Positions 25,631 to 35,890 of a stretch of DNA of 64,000 bases are shown here, piece by piece. The notes beneath the pieces were generated by a model. It made no database searches and was not told the origin of the DNA. It worked only from the letters and a program-made list of their open reading frames with translations. Numbering within the stretch: position 1 is the first letter of the stretch; each line of letters begins with the position of its first letter. The position numbers and the translations under genes were made by a program. The DNA comes from Ministeria vibrans ATCC 50519 (Eukaryota > Protista > Filasterea). The stretch is from assembly GCA_943704425.1 (NCBI GenBank), contig CALSCP010002792.1:1-64000 (forward strand), written 5' to 3'.

Positions 25631-26979
25631 TTAATTGATGTTGAGCAGTTCTTTGAGCTGTTTCACTGTGTCTTCTGGTGACGTGACGGTGTGGCCAATC
25701 GTTCTTTCGTCACTGAATATTTCGTAGTCATTTCCGCCCTATTTCAATCATTTAGCAGTGGATTGTGAAAAGCCATCATGTTTTTGTGTACCTTTGAAGT
25801 TTTGTCGCCAAAAAAGTGGATTTTGGAGTAGTTCTGGGGTTCGACGTGACGCAAACAGTACGTTTTATCCCAGCCAGTGGGAAACACGTCAATGCTAATT
25901 TGCCCTAAACGAGGAGAGTCACAGGTGAGCTTTAACTCTATTATATTTGTGGGTGGAGAGGAGGGTTGTTGGTTGATTGGGTTTTTTATACCGCCAATGG
26001 AAAAGGTCAATGGTAAGTCAGCAAATTCCTGTTGCATTGTACTGACCATTTTCGCGCGAATAGAATGAACCTTGAAAAAAAAAAAAGAGGAAAAGAGGGG
26101 TCGGTTGGATGTCTTCTCCTTGCGTTTGGTTACTTTGTCGTATTCGGCAAACTCGAGACGCTCCTCTTGTGAACACGATCGACCAACTGGGGACACATTG
26201 ATCATTCCATTGCGGTACTCGACAAATGTTCCACTGTGTGAATGAGAATGAGGGAGTAGCCGTCAATATGCTTGCTTTTAGTTTTGGTTTGGTGCACTTA
26301 CCGTTTCTTAGGGATCCTTACGTGTGTACCAAGGTACACCAACACCCAATTGAGAAAGCGCGAGATGGTCTCTTCGCCTAAGTACTCAGTGATGCTCTAA
26401 AACATAGTAATCGGGTGTTGAACACGAGATTATGGTGCTGATACGGACGTACCGCCTTGCCAATGAGCTCAGTGCCTTTGTAGGCAACCAGGCCATTCTC
26501 CGAAAAGACATAATCAAACACTTTGGTCACTACAACAAAGAATGTGTCTGTGTGAGATGGAGTGTGTTCAGATGTCCAGTTGCGTTTCTCTCGCTTCACA
26601 GTCTAAAATACACAGACAATCTCATACTACACACCATCCCAGATGCAGGCGGGTGCCATACAGGCGGAAGTACCCCTTCTGGTTGCCACATCAATCCCCT
26701 CCAAAAATAAAACAGCTCCAACTTACTGTCCTCTCCTGCCATCTGCTCGATAATTTTACGGTGATCCGAGCCGCCCACAATGCCAATGTGAACGCGCGAG
26801 CGCACTGTGTCAATCATATCGCGCATCTCTTTGCCAACAGTCTGCGATGTGATGAGGTTCGATTTCGAAAGAGACACATCATCTTTTCCATTTGGAGTGT
26901 GTACCAATCGAGGCATTGTCAGTGTTCCATCCACATCAAACAAGATCAAGGTGGAGCTGTCGCGGTCGGCGGTACTCAT
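25631..26979 (-). CDS. PMM: Phosphomannomutase (HAD family), multi-exon
   Basis: [45 protein letters not shown]|[32 protein letters not shown]. Confidence 0.95.
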
Positions 26980-27315
26980 GAGAGAATTTGAAAGAAAGGA
27001 GAAATAAATGTGTTTATATTTTATTGTGTGAGTCAAAGTTTGAAATTACTCAAATTAGTCGTGAAAAAAATCAAAATAAATTAGTTTTTGTACTATCATA
27101 GTCATGTTTTGTCAGTGAGTACAGCTCTCGATTCTCCCTTCATAATTTTGATTTTTCTTTATGAGCGCTTCGATCGCAACGGGGTTAGTCTATGGCGGAA
27201 GATTCCGTATTGTATTATTTGATAACAATAATAATTAATAATATCTTCTTCATTATAATATTTTCTTTGATATAATAAATTGGAAATGCATATGCTCGTA
27301 TTGCATTCTGCATCT

Positions 27316-29524
27316 CTACTCCTTGAGCTGCTTCAAAGCCACACGAATCTACGTCATGATTTTTAATTATTAGTAGAAGAAGAAGAAGACATTTCCAATT
27401 TATTATCAAATAAAAGCACAACAACAATAGTAACAATACTAATTACGGAGTACGAGGTATTAATAATTGAAAGTGGCGTTGAGAAAACCCAAGACGAATA
27501 ATAGATGGAGTAAATAATAATAATAATAATAATAATAATAGTAATAATATCATCAATTCTTACACGCCCAACGTGGCCCATTGGCATTTGAATGTGAAGG
27601 AGCTCGTCGTCCTGCATGCACATCAGCGCGCGGCCGTCGTAGTCATTCGTGCGCATGATATCCACACTGCTCTGAGGGATATCGACGGTGTTTTTGAGCC
27701 ATTCGCACACGTCATCAAGGCTCCATGTTGTCCAATCAACATTGTCTTGACGCAGTGGCGTTGGCAAACGCGCGCGGAACTGACGCAATATTTCCCGAGC
27801 ACACTTAAAGGCTTGACCAACCATGACAGGCTTCTGCTCGGGGTTCAGCCGAGCGGTCGCAATGTGTGTTGCCTTGTTCCCATTTTTGCGCATGTCGTTA
27901 AGCAGCTGCGTGAACTCGGAGGTGCAGTTCGGAATCTTGTCAATGCGCGAATGAAGTGTCTCTTGAGGGAACGCCGGCCCAAGGTGAAATTCAACGGCAG
28001 CTTCGCACATCACACGACAACACAGCAATGCAATAAGAGTCATTGACTCGCCATAGTACTCTTGACTCAGATTCATTGCCTAAAATAATAATGATAAGAT
28101 TTGTTAGACCGTCCTTAGGGCTATTTGCTCAAGTGACTTCACTTACCTTCGCAATTTGACCGAGGGGAGCTTGCACCAACTCCCCTGCTCCGGGGTTCCG
28201 AGAAATATCAAATAGAGTATTGCGAAGATCACACCATTCGTCGTGGGTAAACTCAGTCGGAGGATGAGGGTCGGTTGACATATCTACCGTCGAACCAGTC
28301 AGCAGAGGAGGGCGCACTTTGGTTGGTGTTGTGGACGTGATGGTGGCAGCAGGTTGGCGCATCGCAGAACGAGCGGGGCCCTTGCCTTTGACCTTGGCTG
28401 GGGACGGGACGCGGTTGGTGGGGAGGACGACTGGAAACGAGTTGAGTGTAGTGCTCGTCGCCGCCTCAAATGGTGGGGGGGGGTGAAAATATGTGCATGT
28501 ACCGGCGCGGAGATGCACACAGCTCACACCATACTTGCAAGTCCGAACTCCGGACTCTGGTGGCACTGCAGCACCCGTCACATTGCTCTTCTGCTTTGGC
28601 TCGCCGGCTGTTTTCACATGACCTCGCGCCTGGGAAGGGTGACGGGATTTGCACTTGTTTCGCGCCATGCCATCGTGGCACTCCCGCTCCAGTTTCACGT
28701 CGACAGCTGCAGGGCGTGATCCTTGCGCTGCGGCCGCTGCCGCCTCTTCTACTCGCTCTACCTTTCCAACTGGCATCCGTGCCTGCGCGAGAGATCATAA
28801 ATAAAATTATTATGTTATTTTCTTATTATAATAGGCATACCGGCTGCGGCGACAATGTATCCTTGATGAACTGAATTGTGGTTTGGTCCCCGGACTCCTT
28901 TGCCAATGTAAGCAAGGTTTTTTTGAACTTGGTCGTGATCGCTGTGCTGGCGCCGCCGTCCTCCACCAGCATACGACAGCACTCTGCGTGGCCCTTGTTT
29001 GCCGCCAGCATCAGTGCGGAGAGCCCGTCCTCATCAACCTTGTCAATGACGGCGCGCGAGGAACGCACAAGCTCTTGGACGGCGGAAATTGATCCGTTTG
29101 CGGCGGCAATGGAGAGAGGCGTGCGAAGTTTCTCATTTTTCGCATTGACATCCGCGTTGAGAGAAAGAAGGACTTTTACAACGTCTCCGTAGTCCAGAGA
29201 TGCCGCCAGCATCAATGGAGTCAGGTGACGATCGTTTTCGTGGTCGACCGGCAGAAGGTGTAGTTGAGAAAGGTCGTGGAGAACTTTCGCGTGGCGCCCC
29301 AGGACCAGCTTCACCACAATCGTGTTTCCATCGTCGTCTATCGTATTGACCAAGAGTGGAATGTCCTTGAGAGGGCGCGTCAGTTGGTTCAAGTCGCCCA
29401 TTTCCGCTGCCAGCATCAGCTAAGGGTTGACCAAAGGGAATTCAATTTATCGGAATATTATCGAGAAGCGGAGGCGCAAACTACAGACCTTGCGAAGTAC
29501 AGTGTCCGTTATTTGAGGCTCCAT
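27316..29524 (-). CDS. Ankyrin repeat - CCCH zinc finger - HEPN/DUF4145-like - SAM domain protein (~599 aa; exons 29524-29489, 29419-28841, 28782-28147, 28079-27564, 27348-27316)
   Basis: Ankyrin repeats (TPLMLAA..DVNAK, TPLSIAA, GLSALMLAA.KGH), CCCH finger CKYGVSCVHLRAGTCTYFHP, DUF4145-like CRVMCE...LHSRI...LNDMRKNGNKATH, and SAM WSLDDVCEWL...DGRALM..DELLHIQMPMGHVGR|IRVALKQL. All four introns are phase-0 GT-AG. Confidence 0.8.
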
Positions 29525-29906: not shown

Positions 29907-32900
29907 ATGACTGACCGGGTCCCCCCTGAGCAGACTGTGGTGGTGAAAAAATGCAAAAGCGACGAAGATTTTGCTGCGCATATCGATTTGCGTCTGGTGA
30001 AAAGCTGCGCTCGTTCTGCCCACGGCGATTGCTACCTCAATTTCTACTGGGCTCCCGATGCAACCAGCGCAGCTGCAAAACTGTCTGGGGCCGGGTTCAA
30101 GGCGTACGTCAAGCCACAGACAGGGACGTACCAAGGCAAGGGCAACATTACGCTGATGGTTTCCAACACCGAGTTGCGCACAATCGCCCACCTCCTCCAA
30201 GGCGACACCGCCGCCAAAGACGTCGTTTTGCCGTTATCAAACGAGAAGACCCACGCCGTCTTCCTTGTTTTCAAGACGCGCCCTTCAGCCAATTTGTTGA
30301 AGAAAAAATTGTTGAACCTCAAGTACACTGTCGAACTCTACGATCCCGCTTCCCCCGGCTCCGCTTCTGCTTCCCATCAGTCTTGTGACGATGCTGGAGC
30401 GGGTTCCAACAAAACCGCTCAGCGCGAACGAACCGCGCACATGACAACATCAAAAAAATCAACCACTAAAAAGCCCGCCGCCGCCGCCGCCGCCGCCGCC
30501 CACACTCCTCCGGCCTATGCACCGCATCAGCACCCTCATACACGTCCTGCTGCTGCATCAGTCCAACCGTCGGCGTCACATCCGGTCGCTCGTGAGAGCC
30601 CTCCTGCTCTCCTGCAAGTGATGAATATTCCGCCAGCCAACGAAAGCGTCACCCGCATCCACAAACTAATTACTGACGCAGACATCTCTGTCCAGACCGT
30701 CTCTACAGATGGCGCCAACACCCATGGATTCTTTGCGTTTTCTTCGCCCGAGGACGCCGCTTTGGCGCAAGGCATAGTCCAGTCACTTGACCTCACCTGC
30801 ACGCTCAAACTCCGACAAGGAAAACGACCCGCACCGGCAAATCCCCGTCAAGGCGCTGCAGCTACTCATGCTGCCTCACCATCTACCTCTACGACAACTA
30901 AAAAAGCTACTACTACGACTACTACTGCTGCTGCTGCTCAACCTGCCCCTCGTCAGCCGGCCAAATCCTTTTCGCAAATCGTCAAGGAGGATGTGCCCGC
31001 TGCACTTACCGCCGCTCAAGAGCGTCTCGCTGCCCTGAACACCCAGCTGCAAAAGTTACAGCAAATTGCGCAACGCTCCCTTACTCTCAAGCAGGTTACG
31101 GACAACGTTGAGGGCCGCAAAGTTGTCGAGCAGCGCATCGACGAGATCGAGAAGGAACTTAACTCGTTCTGCAAGCGTCGCGACCAACTCCTGCATCGAC
31201 CACTCCGCGATTGTTTTGCCGCCAACGAGCTTGCGCGCGAATGCCGTCGTCTAAAGCAAGGACTTCCCATCTACGCCGTGCGCAACGAGATCATCGAGGG
31301 ACTTCAACAGAGTCGCTGCATTATTGTCGTGGGCGCCACTGGTTCAGGAAAGTGAGTTGACGCGAAAACTTTTTCACTTTTCAGTGCAATTTCTCAACCC
31401 CCCTCCCCTCTTCATTTAGATCCACACAGGTGGTCCAGTACATAGCTGACTCCCTGGCGCTTAGCCCGAACCAGTCCATCCTATGCTCGCAACCGCGCAA
31501 GTTGGCTGCAACGTCTCTCGCCGAGCGCGTCAACCAAGAGTACGGTGGCGACGCTCACGACGTTGTCTTTCAGGGGCGCTTGCTCGACCGAGACCCGCAG
31601 CATCCGCCCATTGTTTCCTTTGTGACGCACTCTTTGCTGCTGGACGAGCTCCGCGAAGACCCCAACCTGAGTCGTTTTGGCTGTGTCGTTGTTGACGAAG
31701 TGCACGAGCGCACGGTGAACGGCGACATTTGCATTGCTCTCCTGCGGTCGCTCTTCACTCGTCGCTCCGATTTTTACGTGGTGCTTACCTCGGCGACAAT
31801 GGACGCCCAGCGCTTCAGCGACTATTTCCACAGCGCCAAGATTTTCAACGTACCCGGCAAGACATTTCCCGTCCTCATCGAGTACGACTCGGGCAAGAAC
31901 TGCAGTAGCGACAATGACGGCTTCATCTCGAACGCGAAAGACCTCACTCCGCGTGCAGTTGATGCAGTCATGAAGATTCTTGTCAAGGAGAATGCTTTGG
32001 CGTCACGCGGCGCCGAGATCACCCACGCTCGCGACATTCTTGTCTTCTTACCGGGCGTTTACGAAATCACTGCCGCAATCCGATCCCTCGAGCATGACCT
32101 AAAAAAGTCCGCATTCCCCGACTTGGCTTTGTGCCTGCCCCTTCACGCCAAGCTTGAGTCGGCCGAGCAGAATCGAGCGCTTGCGCGGGCACCCGCGCAT
32201 AAGATCAAGGTGGTGTTTGCCACGACCATTGCCGAGACGTCGGTCACCATTGATGGCATCGGACACATTGTGGACACGGGCCTGGCAAACCGTCTCGTGT
32301 ACGACGAGAAGCGTGGCGTTGGCGTTGTGCGCCTTTCGCCCATCAGCCAGAGCGCCGCCAACCAACGTAGTGGTCGCGCCGGCCGCACTGCTCCCGGTGT
32401 CGCACATCGCCTGTACACAATGGACGCGTACGAGCGAATGGACACGAACGAAGTAGCCGAGATCATGCGACAACATCCTTCCGCCGCACTTCTCACCGTG
32501 ACGGGCTTTGGCGAGGATCTTCGTACTCTTAATCTGCTGAACAAGCCGACTGAGGACAGCATCGCCTCCGCTGAGGAGTATCTCGAGCTCATGGGCGCTT
32601 TTGACCGAACCACTGCAAGCTACAGCCGCGATGCCGATGGCCAGCCTCGCTATGAGATATCGCAGACGGGGCGAGTGATGCTGCGCATTCCCTTTCGCGC
32701 TCAAGAATCGCGTCTTGTCCTGGCGGGCTTTGAGCACGACGTGCTTGCAGAGTGCGCACTCATTGCCGCATTCTTCCAGAGTGACATTCCTCTGTTCCGT
32801 CGCGGCAACTCGCCCGCCGACGAGGAGGCGTTTGCTCTGGCGCGCTACAACTACCAGGATGAAGACGGCGATGCCTTTGTTGCCCTCGCCGTGTTTCGCG

Positions 32901-35886
32901 ACTGGATTGCGGCGGGAAAGTCGGCCGAGTGGCCCATGCAACACGGTGTGGCCAGAAAGCCGCTCCAGCGCGCGGTTTCACTCTACAACGAGGCACTCAG
33001 TGCTCTGGCCAATGCTCTTCCAGGCGCCGCAAAAGATCAGTGTGCTCGCGTGCGAAATCTCAGCAACGTCGACCTCGACGCGAAGATCGGCTCGGATAAG
33101 CGCCGCCTCATACGCCGAGCGCTTGCGACAGCCTACTGCAATAGCATCGCCGTCTTCAGTGGCTCCCAGTCAGCCGGATACCACTCCATGCGAGTTGGTG
33201 GCCAGGTGGTGCTGCACCCGTCCACGGCATTTTGTACCCAACAAGAAACTCCCCCGGTTGTCATGTATTGTCGTGTTGACGAAACTTCGCGCTGCTTTAT
33301 GAAGAACGTGATGCGCCTCGACGAGGCAGCGCTGCCCGAGCGCATTCGCTCTCGTCCCTTTGTGCGAAATGCTCTCAAGGACCGCCGTCTTACCTGTCGT
33401 GCCCTCGGCAAGCTTGGTAATTCCCTTTTGAAGTGCCTCAATGGACCGCGAGGCGAAACACTGCGCGAACTCGAGAGCCTCCACGATATTTGCATCTCAA
33501 TCGACTGGCACCACCACACGGTAGATGTGTGGTACGCGGACCCGGCGGGATTGGCGGGGTTCCAGAATAGCTTCCGTGACCTTCGCAGCTCGCTAGAGCT
33601 TGCCAACATTGACATTGATATGCCCTCCTCGAAGGTGCGTCTGTGCCTCAGCGCCGGTGGTCACCTTGAATCGTGCCTTTTCGAGGGCCAGTTCAACAGT
33701 GTCAACTTTACGGGATGCCCATCGCGACAGTCGATGCCGCTAGATGCGCAAGTGCGCGAGATTTTTGCGCCGGCTGGACGTGTGCTGAAACTGAACGTGT
33801 GGCCTTCCGCGACACCGACAAGCACTCGCAATGGCACAGTGACATTTGCAACGCCAGAACAGGCGGCGAGGTGCATCGACACTCTGAGCGGCCAGGTGAT
33901 GGAGTCGGGCATTCTACAGTGCACACAGGCGCAGGAGAAGCTTGTGTCGGGCACGTTGTTGCAGGGCTCCTCGGTGGTGGTGACCTGGAGCTACAGCGAG
34001 TGCACTGGAATGGCGTTTGCGAACGGACACACTGTTGAGATGGGCAAGATACTGCGCGAGTATGTGGATCGCTCGCAAAAAGGACATCCCGTCACTCTCA
34101 ACCGCCCCGGTCAACAATGCATTCCGCTGACGCTCAGGCCGAACAAGGACCCCGCGATGAAAAATTCTATTGTGATCTATAACCTACCTCCGGATGCCAC
34201 AATCCGCGAGATTGAAACTGCGTTGGGCGCCGGCTCCGGTGCCCTGACTATCACGATTCAGCGCAAGCCCATTAATGATTCTGCTACGATTGATGTGGCG
34301 ATGAATGTGGTCATGTTGCAGAGCCTGCTTGGGAGTGTCGGCGAGATCGTGTACCTGCAGACTGCTGTACCCGCCAACCTGACAAAGAACCCCAGTTTCT
34401 CCGCCATTGTCGCCTTCCGCTCGCCCACTTTTGCCCAGACGGCTCATGAGCTCTACGATGGCAAGCGCATTGACGGGCTTGGTATTTTGCCCATTGCCGT
34501 GAAACCTGACGTGTCGACCAAGTTCAAGATCCCCAGCCGTGTCTACACTGCCATGAGTCACCGCATCGCCGAGATCAAGGCAGACTCGCTCAAGACGTCG
34601 CAATGTCGCATTGGTGAGCCAATGGTGAATGGAAATTACACGACTGTGAAGGTGGATGGTGGGAGTCTTGATGAGATTCAGACGCTGAGCAAGACACTCA
34701 CAACCGTCTGTCAGGGACGACTGTTCGTGGTGCCAGACGAGATGCAGTCGGTTCTACGAGACTGTGTCATCAGCGGGGGTCCTTCCTCACGCACTCTCTT
34801 GAGCAAGTTGGAGAAGCAGACAGGTGCTGTGTCAACGATTCACATGCAGCGACTGCGCTTCTTTGGCACGGACGCTCAGATGGACTTGGCGTGCGATACA
34901 CTGATGAAGACTCTGACACGCATTGAGAAGACGAGATCGCAAGAGACACTGCGTCTCGAGCCGACTTGGCTCAAGGCGCTTGCAATGCAGAACGGTCGCA
35001 TCCAGCGCAAAGTGGAGAAAGAAATTGGCCGCGAGTTCCCCGACATCACCATCGCGTGGCGCTTTCGCAAACGAGCTGCGGACGTCATTGGCCCGCGCGA
35101 GCATGTGAAGGCGGCTTTGGGGCGTTTGCGTGCGGAGCTGGAGAACGAGACGCGAGCGCTAGGACTCGTGTCAGGCAAGACCAACGGTGGTGGTGCGGCT
35201 GATGCTGAAGTGCTCTGTCCCATTTGCATCTGTGAGCTCAGCGAAGACACCGTGCAATTACTCTTGTGTGGTCATGAGATGTGTCGGGAGTGCTTTGAGC
35301 AGATGGTCTCGTCGAACACATGCGAGTCTGAGGTGTCTCTCCCCATTACATGCCCAGTCGATGGGTGCAACAAGTCGCTCATCTCTACAGATCTGCAGCT
35401 GTACCTTACTGACGAGATGCTTGTGAGGCTCGGCAATGCGGTCCTTGCGAAACTGACGAGTGATTCGAGAAACGGTGTGGTCCACTGCCCGTCACCCAAC
35501 TGTACCGGCTATCTGTTTGCATCGCAAGGCGTTCGAACGCCAACGAGCCAGCCAGGCAAGACAGTGCTGGTGAGCCACTGCAGCGATTGTGACCATGACA
35601 TCTGCCTGGACTGCAGCAGCCAGGCGCACTCGAAACGGCTGTGTGGCGAGCCTGAAGACGCCGCTGTGCGAGCCATGCTGCTCAAACAAGGACTGCGCGA
35701 GTGCCGGTGCAAACAGATGATCCAAAAGACGGAAGGATGCAATCGCGTGACTTGCCGGTGTGGCGTCTCCGTGTGCTGGGTGTGTGGACGCCATTTTGAC
35801 TCATCGAGTGCATGCTACGCTCATTATGACGTGCGCACTGATCCATGCTATGCGAAATGTTTTACGGGGCTGTTGTACGACCAGTC

Positions 35887-35890
<4 letters not shown>
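29907..35890 (+). CDS. RRM-like - DEAH-box RNA helicase - RRM/KH-like - RBR E3 ubiquitin ligase fusion (plant DEAH11/12-like architecture), ~1970 aa, one intron 31352-31419
   Basis: GLPIY, GATGSGK|STQ, QPRKLAA, DEVHER, SAT, FLPG, TTIAETSVTI, QRSGRAGR. C-terminal RING1 (CPIC..CGH.MC.EC..CPVDGC), IBR (CPSPNC..CSDC..CLDC...H..C) and RING2 (CRC..KTEGCNRVTCRCG..CWVC). Confidence 0.9.

Follow-up and report, generated by a model that had tools for sequence, protein, structure and literature searches.

DUF4145 is placed in the HEPN superfamily, where it is listed for Bacteria ahead of Archaea and double-stranded DNA viruses, and its HEPN domains occur in restriction-modification and abortive-infection contexts; none of the eukaryotic HEPN families in the same 2013 survey is DUF4145-like (Anantharaman et al. 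2013, PMC3710099). In 2026, the zinc-finger–DUF4145 protein RAZR was found to be an RNase with single-stranded RNA as its substrate, in which R146 and H154 are required for phage defence and higher-order oligomerisation is required for function (PMC13017515). Here we describe a gene of the filasterean Ministeria vibrans ATCC 50519, located on the minus strand at positions 27316-29524 of a 64,000-nucleotide stretch of DNA (the window; GenBank assembly GCA_943704425.1, contig CALSCP010002792.1). Its predicted product joins ankyrin repeats, a probable CCCH-like zinc knuckle, a DUF4145-type HEPN-like domain and a SAM domain, and it is called the ank-HEPN-SAM gene below. To our knowledge, RAZR is the one characterised DUF4145 RNase. 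Our literature searches found no published description of the protein family to which it belongs, nothing on DUF4145 that concerns eukaryotes, and nothing relevant on HEPN combined with SAM, ankyrin or CCCH.

At its N-terminus RAZR has a Cys4 zinc ribbon, with which it recognises phage ring proteins, and it lacks ankyrin repeats and a SAM domain, whereas the ank-HEPN-SAM protein has a CCCH-like knuckle, is eukaryotic and is encoded by an intron-bearing gene. RNase L resembles it in beginning with ankyrin repeats and ending in a nuclease of the HEPN superfamily that has to self-associate. However, RNase L has a KEN domain as its nuclease and dimerises through a pseudokinase, and neither is present in the ank-HEPN-SAM protein, as no exon gave a Pfam match to KEN (Ribonuc_2-5A), kinase or pseudokinase even at an expectation value (E) of <=10. 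A first-pass annotation of the window had proposed an RNase L-like design without the kinase; the kinase is indeed missing and the likeness holds for the design, but it does not extend to kinship, and for lack of KEN and kinase domains the protein does not belong to the RNase L/Ire1 KEN family. We consider RAZR the closer precedent. Tankyrase and the ANKS family, in which ankyrin target capture and SAM polymerisation are arranged around an effector, are also similar in design, and differ in domain layout in that the effector of the ank-HEPN-SAM protein is HEPN rather than PARP or none. No similarity was detectable by HMMER to HepT/MNT-HEPN toxins or AF_0298-type minimal HEPN proteins, which have the canonical Rx4-6H motif and are paired with nucleotidyltransferase antitoxins.

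Results

Homology of the helical domain to DUF4145

All domain searches and folds for the ank-HEPN-SAM gene were run on single exons. For residues 1-112 of exon 4, the sole Pfam match was DUF4145 (PF13643), with an E of 0.0053 and 16.0-17.2 bits, below the gathering score of 23.1, and the paralog of this gene, which lies on another contig of the 29.7-Mb genome, likewise matched DUF4145 alone and sub-threshold, at 13.4 bits. When 38 relatives were scanned with Pfam, DUF4145 was matched by 22 of them at E<=0.1, with a best value of 4.3e-7, and relative P0005, scanned separately, exceeded the gathering score with 27.8 bits.

A family profile of 54 sequences was compared by hhalign with 14 bacterial DUF4145 segments found with PF13643, of which 13 were above the Pfam cut-off. 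The result showed a probability of 94.5% and an E of 8.3e-8 over 84 columns, and both motifs fell in register, with R22-x3-E26 on the bacterial R..LE and R64-x2-G67-N68-x3-H72 on the bacterial IR..GN.A.H. The DUF4145 HEPN pattern read in the first-pass annotation, R..E followed by R-x2-GN-x-A-x-H, therefore coincided in its columns with the bacterial motifs. The domain assignment itself failed on the Pfam model (17.2 vs 23.1 bits) and was recovered at the level of profile-profile homology.

Other searches were less informative. HMMER searches of PDB sequences yielded chance matches only, both for the profile of 2 sequences and for that of 54, and a word-index protein search with exon 4 gave no match among the 95-300 aa (amino acid) proteins that it covers for that query. 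The leads from the ESM Atlas were bacterial hypothetical proteins of ~120 aa with scores of 0.86-0.90, and one of their clusters was 19% DUF4145.

Single-sequence AlphaFold of exon 4 reached a predicted local distance difference test (pLDDT) of 49 and was replaced by an alignment-based model. With the 54-sequence alignment, AlphaFold2 (AF2) gave the HEPN-like domain a pLDDT of 93 and a predicted template modelling (TM) score of 0.83. Foldseek with this model found no PDB match at E<=0.001, its best-TM rows were HEPN proteins, and HEPN made up 15 of the 17 top rows in a second fold search; the fold signal was drawn from this rank composition and from VIA-align. HEPN structures thus head both fold searches, and the predicted fold is the HEPN alpha-helical bundle, as the first pass had anticipated. 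A two-copy complex prediction of the 112-aa core, which used no alignment, scored 0.02 and speaks neither for nor against dimerisation. Taken together, profile-profile comparison, the Pfam matches of the relatives and the modelled fold identify the helical domain as a divergent DUF4145-type HEPN domain.

Conservation of the motif residues

Conservation was counted over 58 family sequences aligned to the core hidden Markov model. H72 and E26 were invariant (58/58 each), R22 was kept in 56/58 and N68 in about 53/58, while G67 was mostly kept. R64 was present in about 42/58 and otherwise replaced by N, K or S; the ank-HEPN-SAM protein has R. The R..E and R-x2-GN-x3-H residues picked out in the first-pass annotation were thus found to be conserved in homologs. 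Two semi-conserved positions differ in the ank-HEPN-SAM protein, which has K instead of the R of most members at position 69 and T instead of D at position 71, and every strongly conserved residue is kept. In the family tree, a long and unplaced branch leads to this protein, and its paralog is in the main clade. In the metagenomic relatives P0037 and P0070-P0072, which come from an AT-rich lineage, R64 is replaced and the motif reads N-x-[FY]-S-N-x-A-N-H, with N68 and H72 kept; either R64 is dispensable there or another arginine, that at position 69, serves in its place.

The first pass had doubted activity since the motif reads GNxxxH rather than RNxxxH. This worry proved unnecessary, because GN is the consensus of bacterial DUF4145 itself and the R146/H154 pair of RAZR has the same R-x7-H spacing as R64/H72 (PMC13017515). 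R64 and H72 may thus be equivalent to R146 and H154, an assignment made through the DUF4145 motif rather than from the RAZR sequence. The core and both motifs are shared with prokaryotic DUF4145, whereas the eukaryotic branch differs in having its own N-terminal extension (DMxTDxxPPTxF...W...R..L), the consensus GNRxDH...P.EKP and eukaryotic partner domains.

Gene structure and exon junctions

As shown in Table 1, sequence reading and exon translation gave five in-frame exons on the minus strand with a predicted product of 599 aa. All introns are GT..AG and markedly AT-rich compared with the GC-rich exons. The first-pass annotation had described a spliced protein of ~599 aa with about five ankyrin repeats, a C-x5-C-x7-C-x3-H finger and a degenerate second one, the strings CRVMCE and MRKNGNKATH (R codon 27888-27890, H codon 27864-27866) and a C-terminal SAM domain. 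Each of these features was recovered: the exons add up as 12+193+212+172+10 aa, the motif positions are exact, and both fingers are there as patterns.

Table 1 Features of the ank-HEPN-SAM gene, with positions counted in the window
Feature	Position	Strand	Remarks
Exon 1	29489..29524	-	12 aa; ATG at 29524, GT donor at 29488; begins first ankyrin-like repeat, in frame into exon 2
Exon 2	28841..29419	-	193 aa; ankyrin block
Exon 3	28147..28782	-	212 aa; Ala/Pro-rich linker, two Cys/His motifs, HEPN-like N-terminal extension at its end; no Pfam family
Exon 4	27564..28079	-	172 aa; HEPN core and main SAM part
Exon 5	27316..27348	-	10 aa and stop; last SAM helix IRVALKQLKE; AG acceptor 27350-27349
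Degenerate C-x8-C-x3-H motif (CHDGMARNKCKSRH)	28639..28680	-	Read from translation; one Cys fewer than a CCCH finger; no Pfam match
CCCH-like knuckle C-x5-C-x7-C-x3-H (CKYGVSCVHLRAGTCTYFH)	28483..28539	-	Regular-expression pattern
Family-specific N-terminal extension, motif DMxTDxxPPTxFTxxxWxxxRxxL	28195..28320	-	Profile A2, E 2.7e-10, model positions 3-44
Predicted DUF4145-type HEPN core	27744..28079	-	Exon 4 residues 1-112; Pfam, family profile, hhalign, AF2, fold searches
R-x3-E motif, helix 1	28002..28016	-	R22 codon 28016-28014, E26 codon 28004-28002
R-x2-GN-x3-H motif	27864..27890	-	R64 codon 27890-27888, G67-N68 27881-27876, H72 codon 27866-27864
SAM domain, main part	27564..27728	-	Exon 4 residues 118-172; SAM_2 match, SAM_PNT 1.3e-4

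Profile A2, built from unrelated family members, matched exon 4 (E 1.2e-31) as well as the 42 residues at the end of exon 3, and since this profile comes from independent sequences, the gene reading is more than chance. The introns of the paralog are placed differently, and it runs uninterrupted through the positions of two junctions of the ank-HEPN-SAM gene. At the exon 3/4 junction the paralog reads AMNLLQ-ERYG against AK|AMNLSQEYYG, and at the exon 4/5 junction it reads WSRIRNAARVL against VGR|IRVALKQL. In these alignments, both junctions are independently supported by the paralog. For the exon 2/3 junction, which joins the ankyrin block to the rest, no bridging relative was found; the gap there is only 58 nt.

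Ankyrin, zinc-knuckle and SAM domains

In exon 2, Pfam matched Ank_2 (E 1.5e-21, 77.1 bits), Ank (4.8e-21, 74.1 bits) and Ank_5 (6.5e-15), with the Ank models above threshold; 5-6 repeats can be read by eye, of which Pfam takes 3 as canonical. The SAM_2 match at exon 4 residues 118-170 (E 4.1e-6) scored 27.3 bits against a cut-off of 20.5.

The two Cys/His motifs of exon 3 are patterns only, as Pfam zf-CCCH gave no match in this exon even at E<=10. Similar knuckles stand beside the HEPN-like domain in five relatives, N-terminally in P0004 and C-terminally in P0007, P0011, P0012 and P0045, and the P0004 knuckle is above the Pfam zf-CCCH threshold. Because such knuckles adjoin the same domain in these relatives, the CCCH-like finger of exon 3 is probably real. 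A PADLOC match of exon 3 residues 14-95 to PprPDDEXK (E 0.00096, 16.5 bits) fell on the Ala-rich linker and was taken as a compositional artefact. The PADLOC model PD-T7-4 gave no match for the ank-HEPN-SAM protein or its paralog, and 5 of the 38 relatives matched it weakly (best E 0.0014).

Family members and the paralog

When a two-sequence profile of the ank-HEPN-SAM protein and its paralog was run over a set of 1.84 billion representatives, 64 proteins reached E<=0.001 and 17 of these E<=1e-10, with a best E of 7.8e-24. The sources of the family are metagenomes and metatranscriptomes, marine as well as other, together with a single-cell genome of Picozoa in EukProt, and most members are marine-protist proteins. 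One member lies on a compact eukaryotic contig of 36 kb among ribosomal-protein, eIF3g and DEAD-helicase genes, and this context marks the family as a eukaryotic nuclear one.

The partner domains of the family vary. Ankyrin repeats occur together with the HEPN-like domain in P0037 and P0070-72, which also have a weak SAM-like C-terminus. Besides the CCCH knuckles, the partners include WD40 (P0056), FHA (P0026) and RanBP2 fingers (P0031, P0040), and P0059 is a membrane protein. The metagenomic P0058, of 2400 aa, has its HEPN-like domain at the extreme C-terminus, together with ubiquitin, PX, FYVE and UBA domains and a BrxC/BrxD-like ATPase region; its arrangement resembles that of a STAND- or BREX-like sensor-effector.

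Over the 29.7-Mb genome, the family profile found the HEPN-like domain at two loci only. The second is the paralog, on contig C2445 (2177 bp), minus strand 588-2000. It combines a coiled-coil N-terminus of KKEELERAQRE repeats with the same N-terminal extension, the core motif LREFGNRGDH and a SAM-like C-terminus, and its contig is flanked by (CT)n and (GT)n microsatellites. Elsewhere in the genome, Pfam DUF4145 matched only at contig C2097, 73175-73372 minus (E 0.5, 15.2 bits, one internal TGA), which is probably a chance match.

Neighbouring genes

The gene at 29907-35890 on the plus strand stands head-to-head with the ank-HEPN-SAM gene and carries DEAD/Helicase_C/OB_NTP_bind, RRM_1, RING and IBR domains, so that its product combines a DEAH helicase with an RBR-type E3 ligase. 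The two start codons are ~380 bp apart, and a common bidirectional promoter is possible, but in a eukaryote such adjacency is at most a weak sign of shared function. Downstream, the open reading frame at 26596-27036 on the minus strand contains DVDGTLT, a motif characteristic of phosphomannomutase/HAD phosphatases, and is an ordinary housekeeping neighbour.

Discussion

The active site of HEPN RNases needs two domains side by side. In the ank-HEPN-SAM protein R22, E26, R64, N68 and H72 are all kept and aligned to the bacterial motifs, so by analogy with DUF4145 enzymes it is most likely a metal-independent endoribonuclease. Since HEPN domains have to be paired and RAZR is switched on by assembly, SAM-driven association would be the most likely mechanism. 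SAM self-association would bring the HEPN domains together, and catalysis, the cutting of RNA, would fall to the HEPN domain. The ankyrin repeats would form the recognition module, whose ligand or partner possibly controls assembly, and the zinc knuckle may act as an RNA handle that helps to hold the RNA. With somewhat more confidence than doubt, we regard the product of this spliced eukaryotic gene as a modular cytoplasmic protein and a predicted assembly-regulated HEPN endoribonuclease.

The first-pass annotation had interpreted the protein as a ligand- or RNA-gated ribonuclease activated by SAM oligomerisation. The structural part of that interpretation has been borne out by homology, fold and conservation. 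The functional part, which comprises RNase activity, activation through SAM, sensing by the ankyrin repeats and any part played in immunity or RNA surveillance, is inferred by comparison with HEPN enzymes as a group and above all with RAZR.

The main rival explanation, which we judge unlikely, is that the HEPN-like domain has no catalytic activity and instead binds RNA or protein, as in sacsin or in Roquin's HEPN halves, and that the protein is an RNA-regulatory scaffold. Ankyrin repeats and SAM would then serve assembly, while the zinc knuckle and HEPN would bind RNA. Against this, the invariance of E26 and H72 and the near-invariance of R22 and N68 run through 58 diverse sequences with every one of these residues kept here, and the columns match the DUF4145 catalytic motif, of which RAZR requires the R and the H for defence.

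It is improbable that the locus consists of two adjacent genes, one encoding ankyrin repeats only (exons 1-2) and the other a CCCH-HEPN-SAM protein starting from an ATG at 28776, with the fusion being an artefact of the model. Such an ATG does lie 6 nt inside exon 3, at the very junction that no relative found bridges. However, the 58-nt gap is bounded by a good GT..AG pair, is AT-rich like the other introns and leaves no room for a promoter, and ankyrin repeats and the HEPN-like domain do occur within single proteins elsewhere, in P0037 and P0070-72. A chance resemblance of an unrelated four-helix bundle to DUF4145/HEPN is a very improbable account of the helical domain, as DUF4145 is its sole Pfam family and is matched independently by the relatives, one of them above the cut-off, hhalign puts both motifs in register, and HEPN entries dominate two fold searches.

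The ank-HEPN-SAM protein and its family of ~60 clusters could tentatively be seen as the eukaryotic counterpart of bacterial RAZR-type defence RNases. A DUF4145 effector, inherited or acquired from the defence systems of prokaryotes, would have been rewired in protists onto ankyrin, WD40, FHA, CCCH and SAM domains, giving an assembly-activated RNase for antiviral or stress-triggered RNA destruction; we put this forward as a possibility on the doubtful side.

That DUF4145 acts as a HEPN RNase is a recent finding, made in 2026 with the bacterial defence protein RAZR. A distinct eukaryotic DUF4145 branch, with invariant active-site-like residues and varying eukaryotic partners for sensing and polymerisation, would be a further case of a bacterial immune effector fold put to use in eukaryotes. 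The ankyrin–HEPN–SAM arrangement is a compact and testable model of a nuclease switched on by self-assembly, and should the domain have no catalytic activity, the family is nonetheless a new RNA-associated module of eukaryotes.
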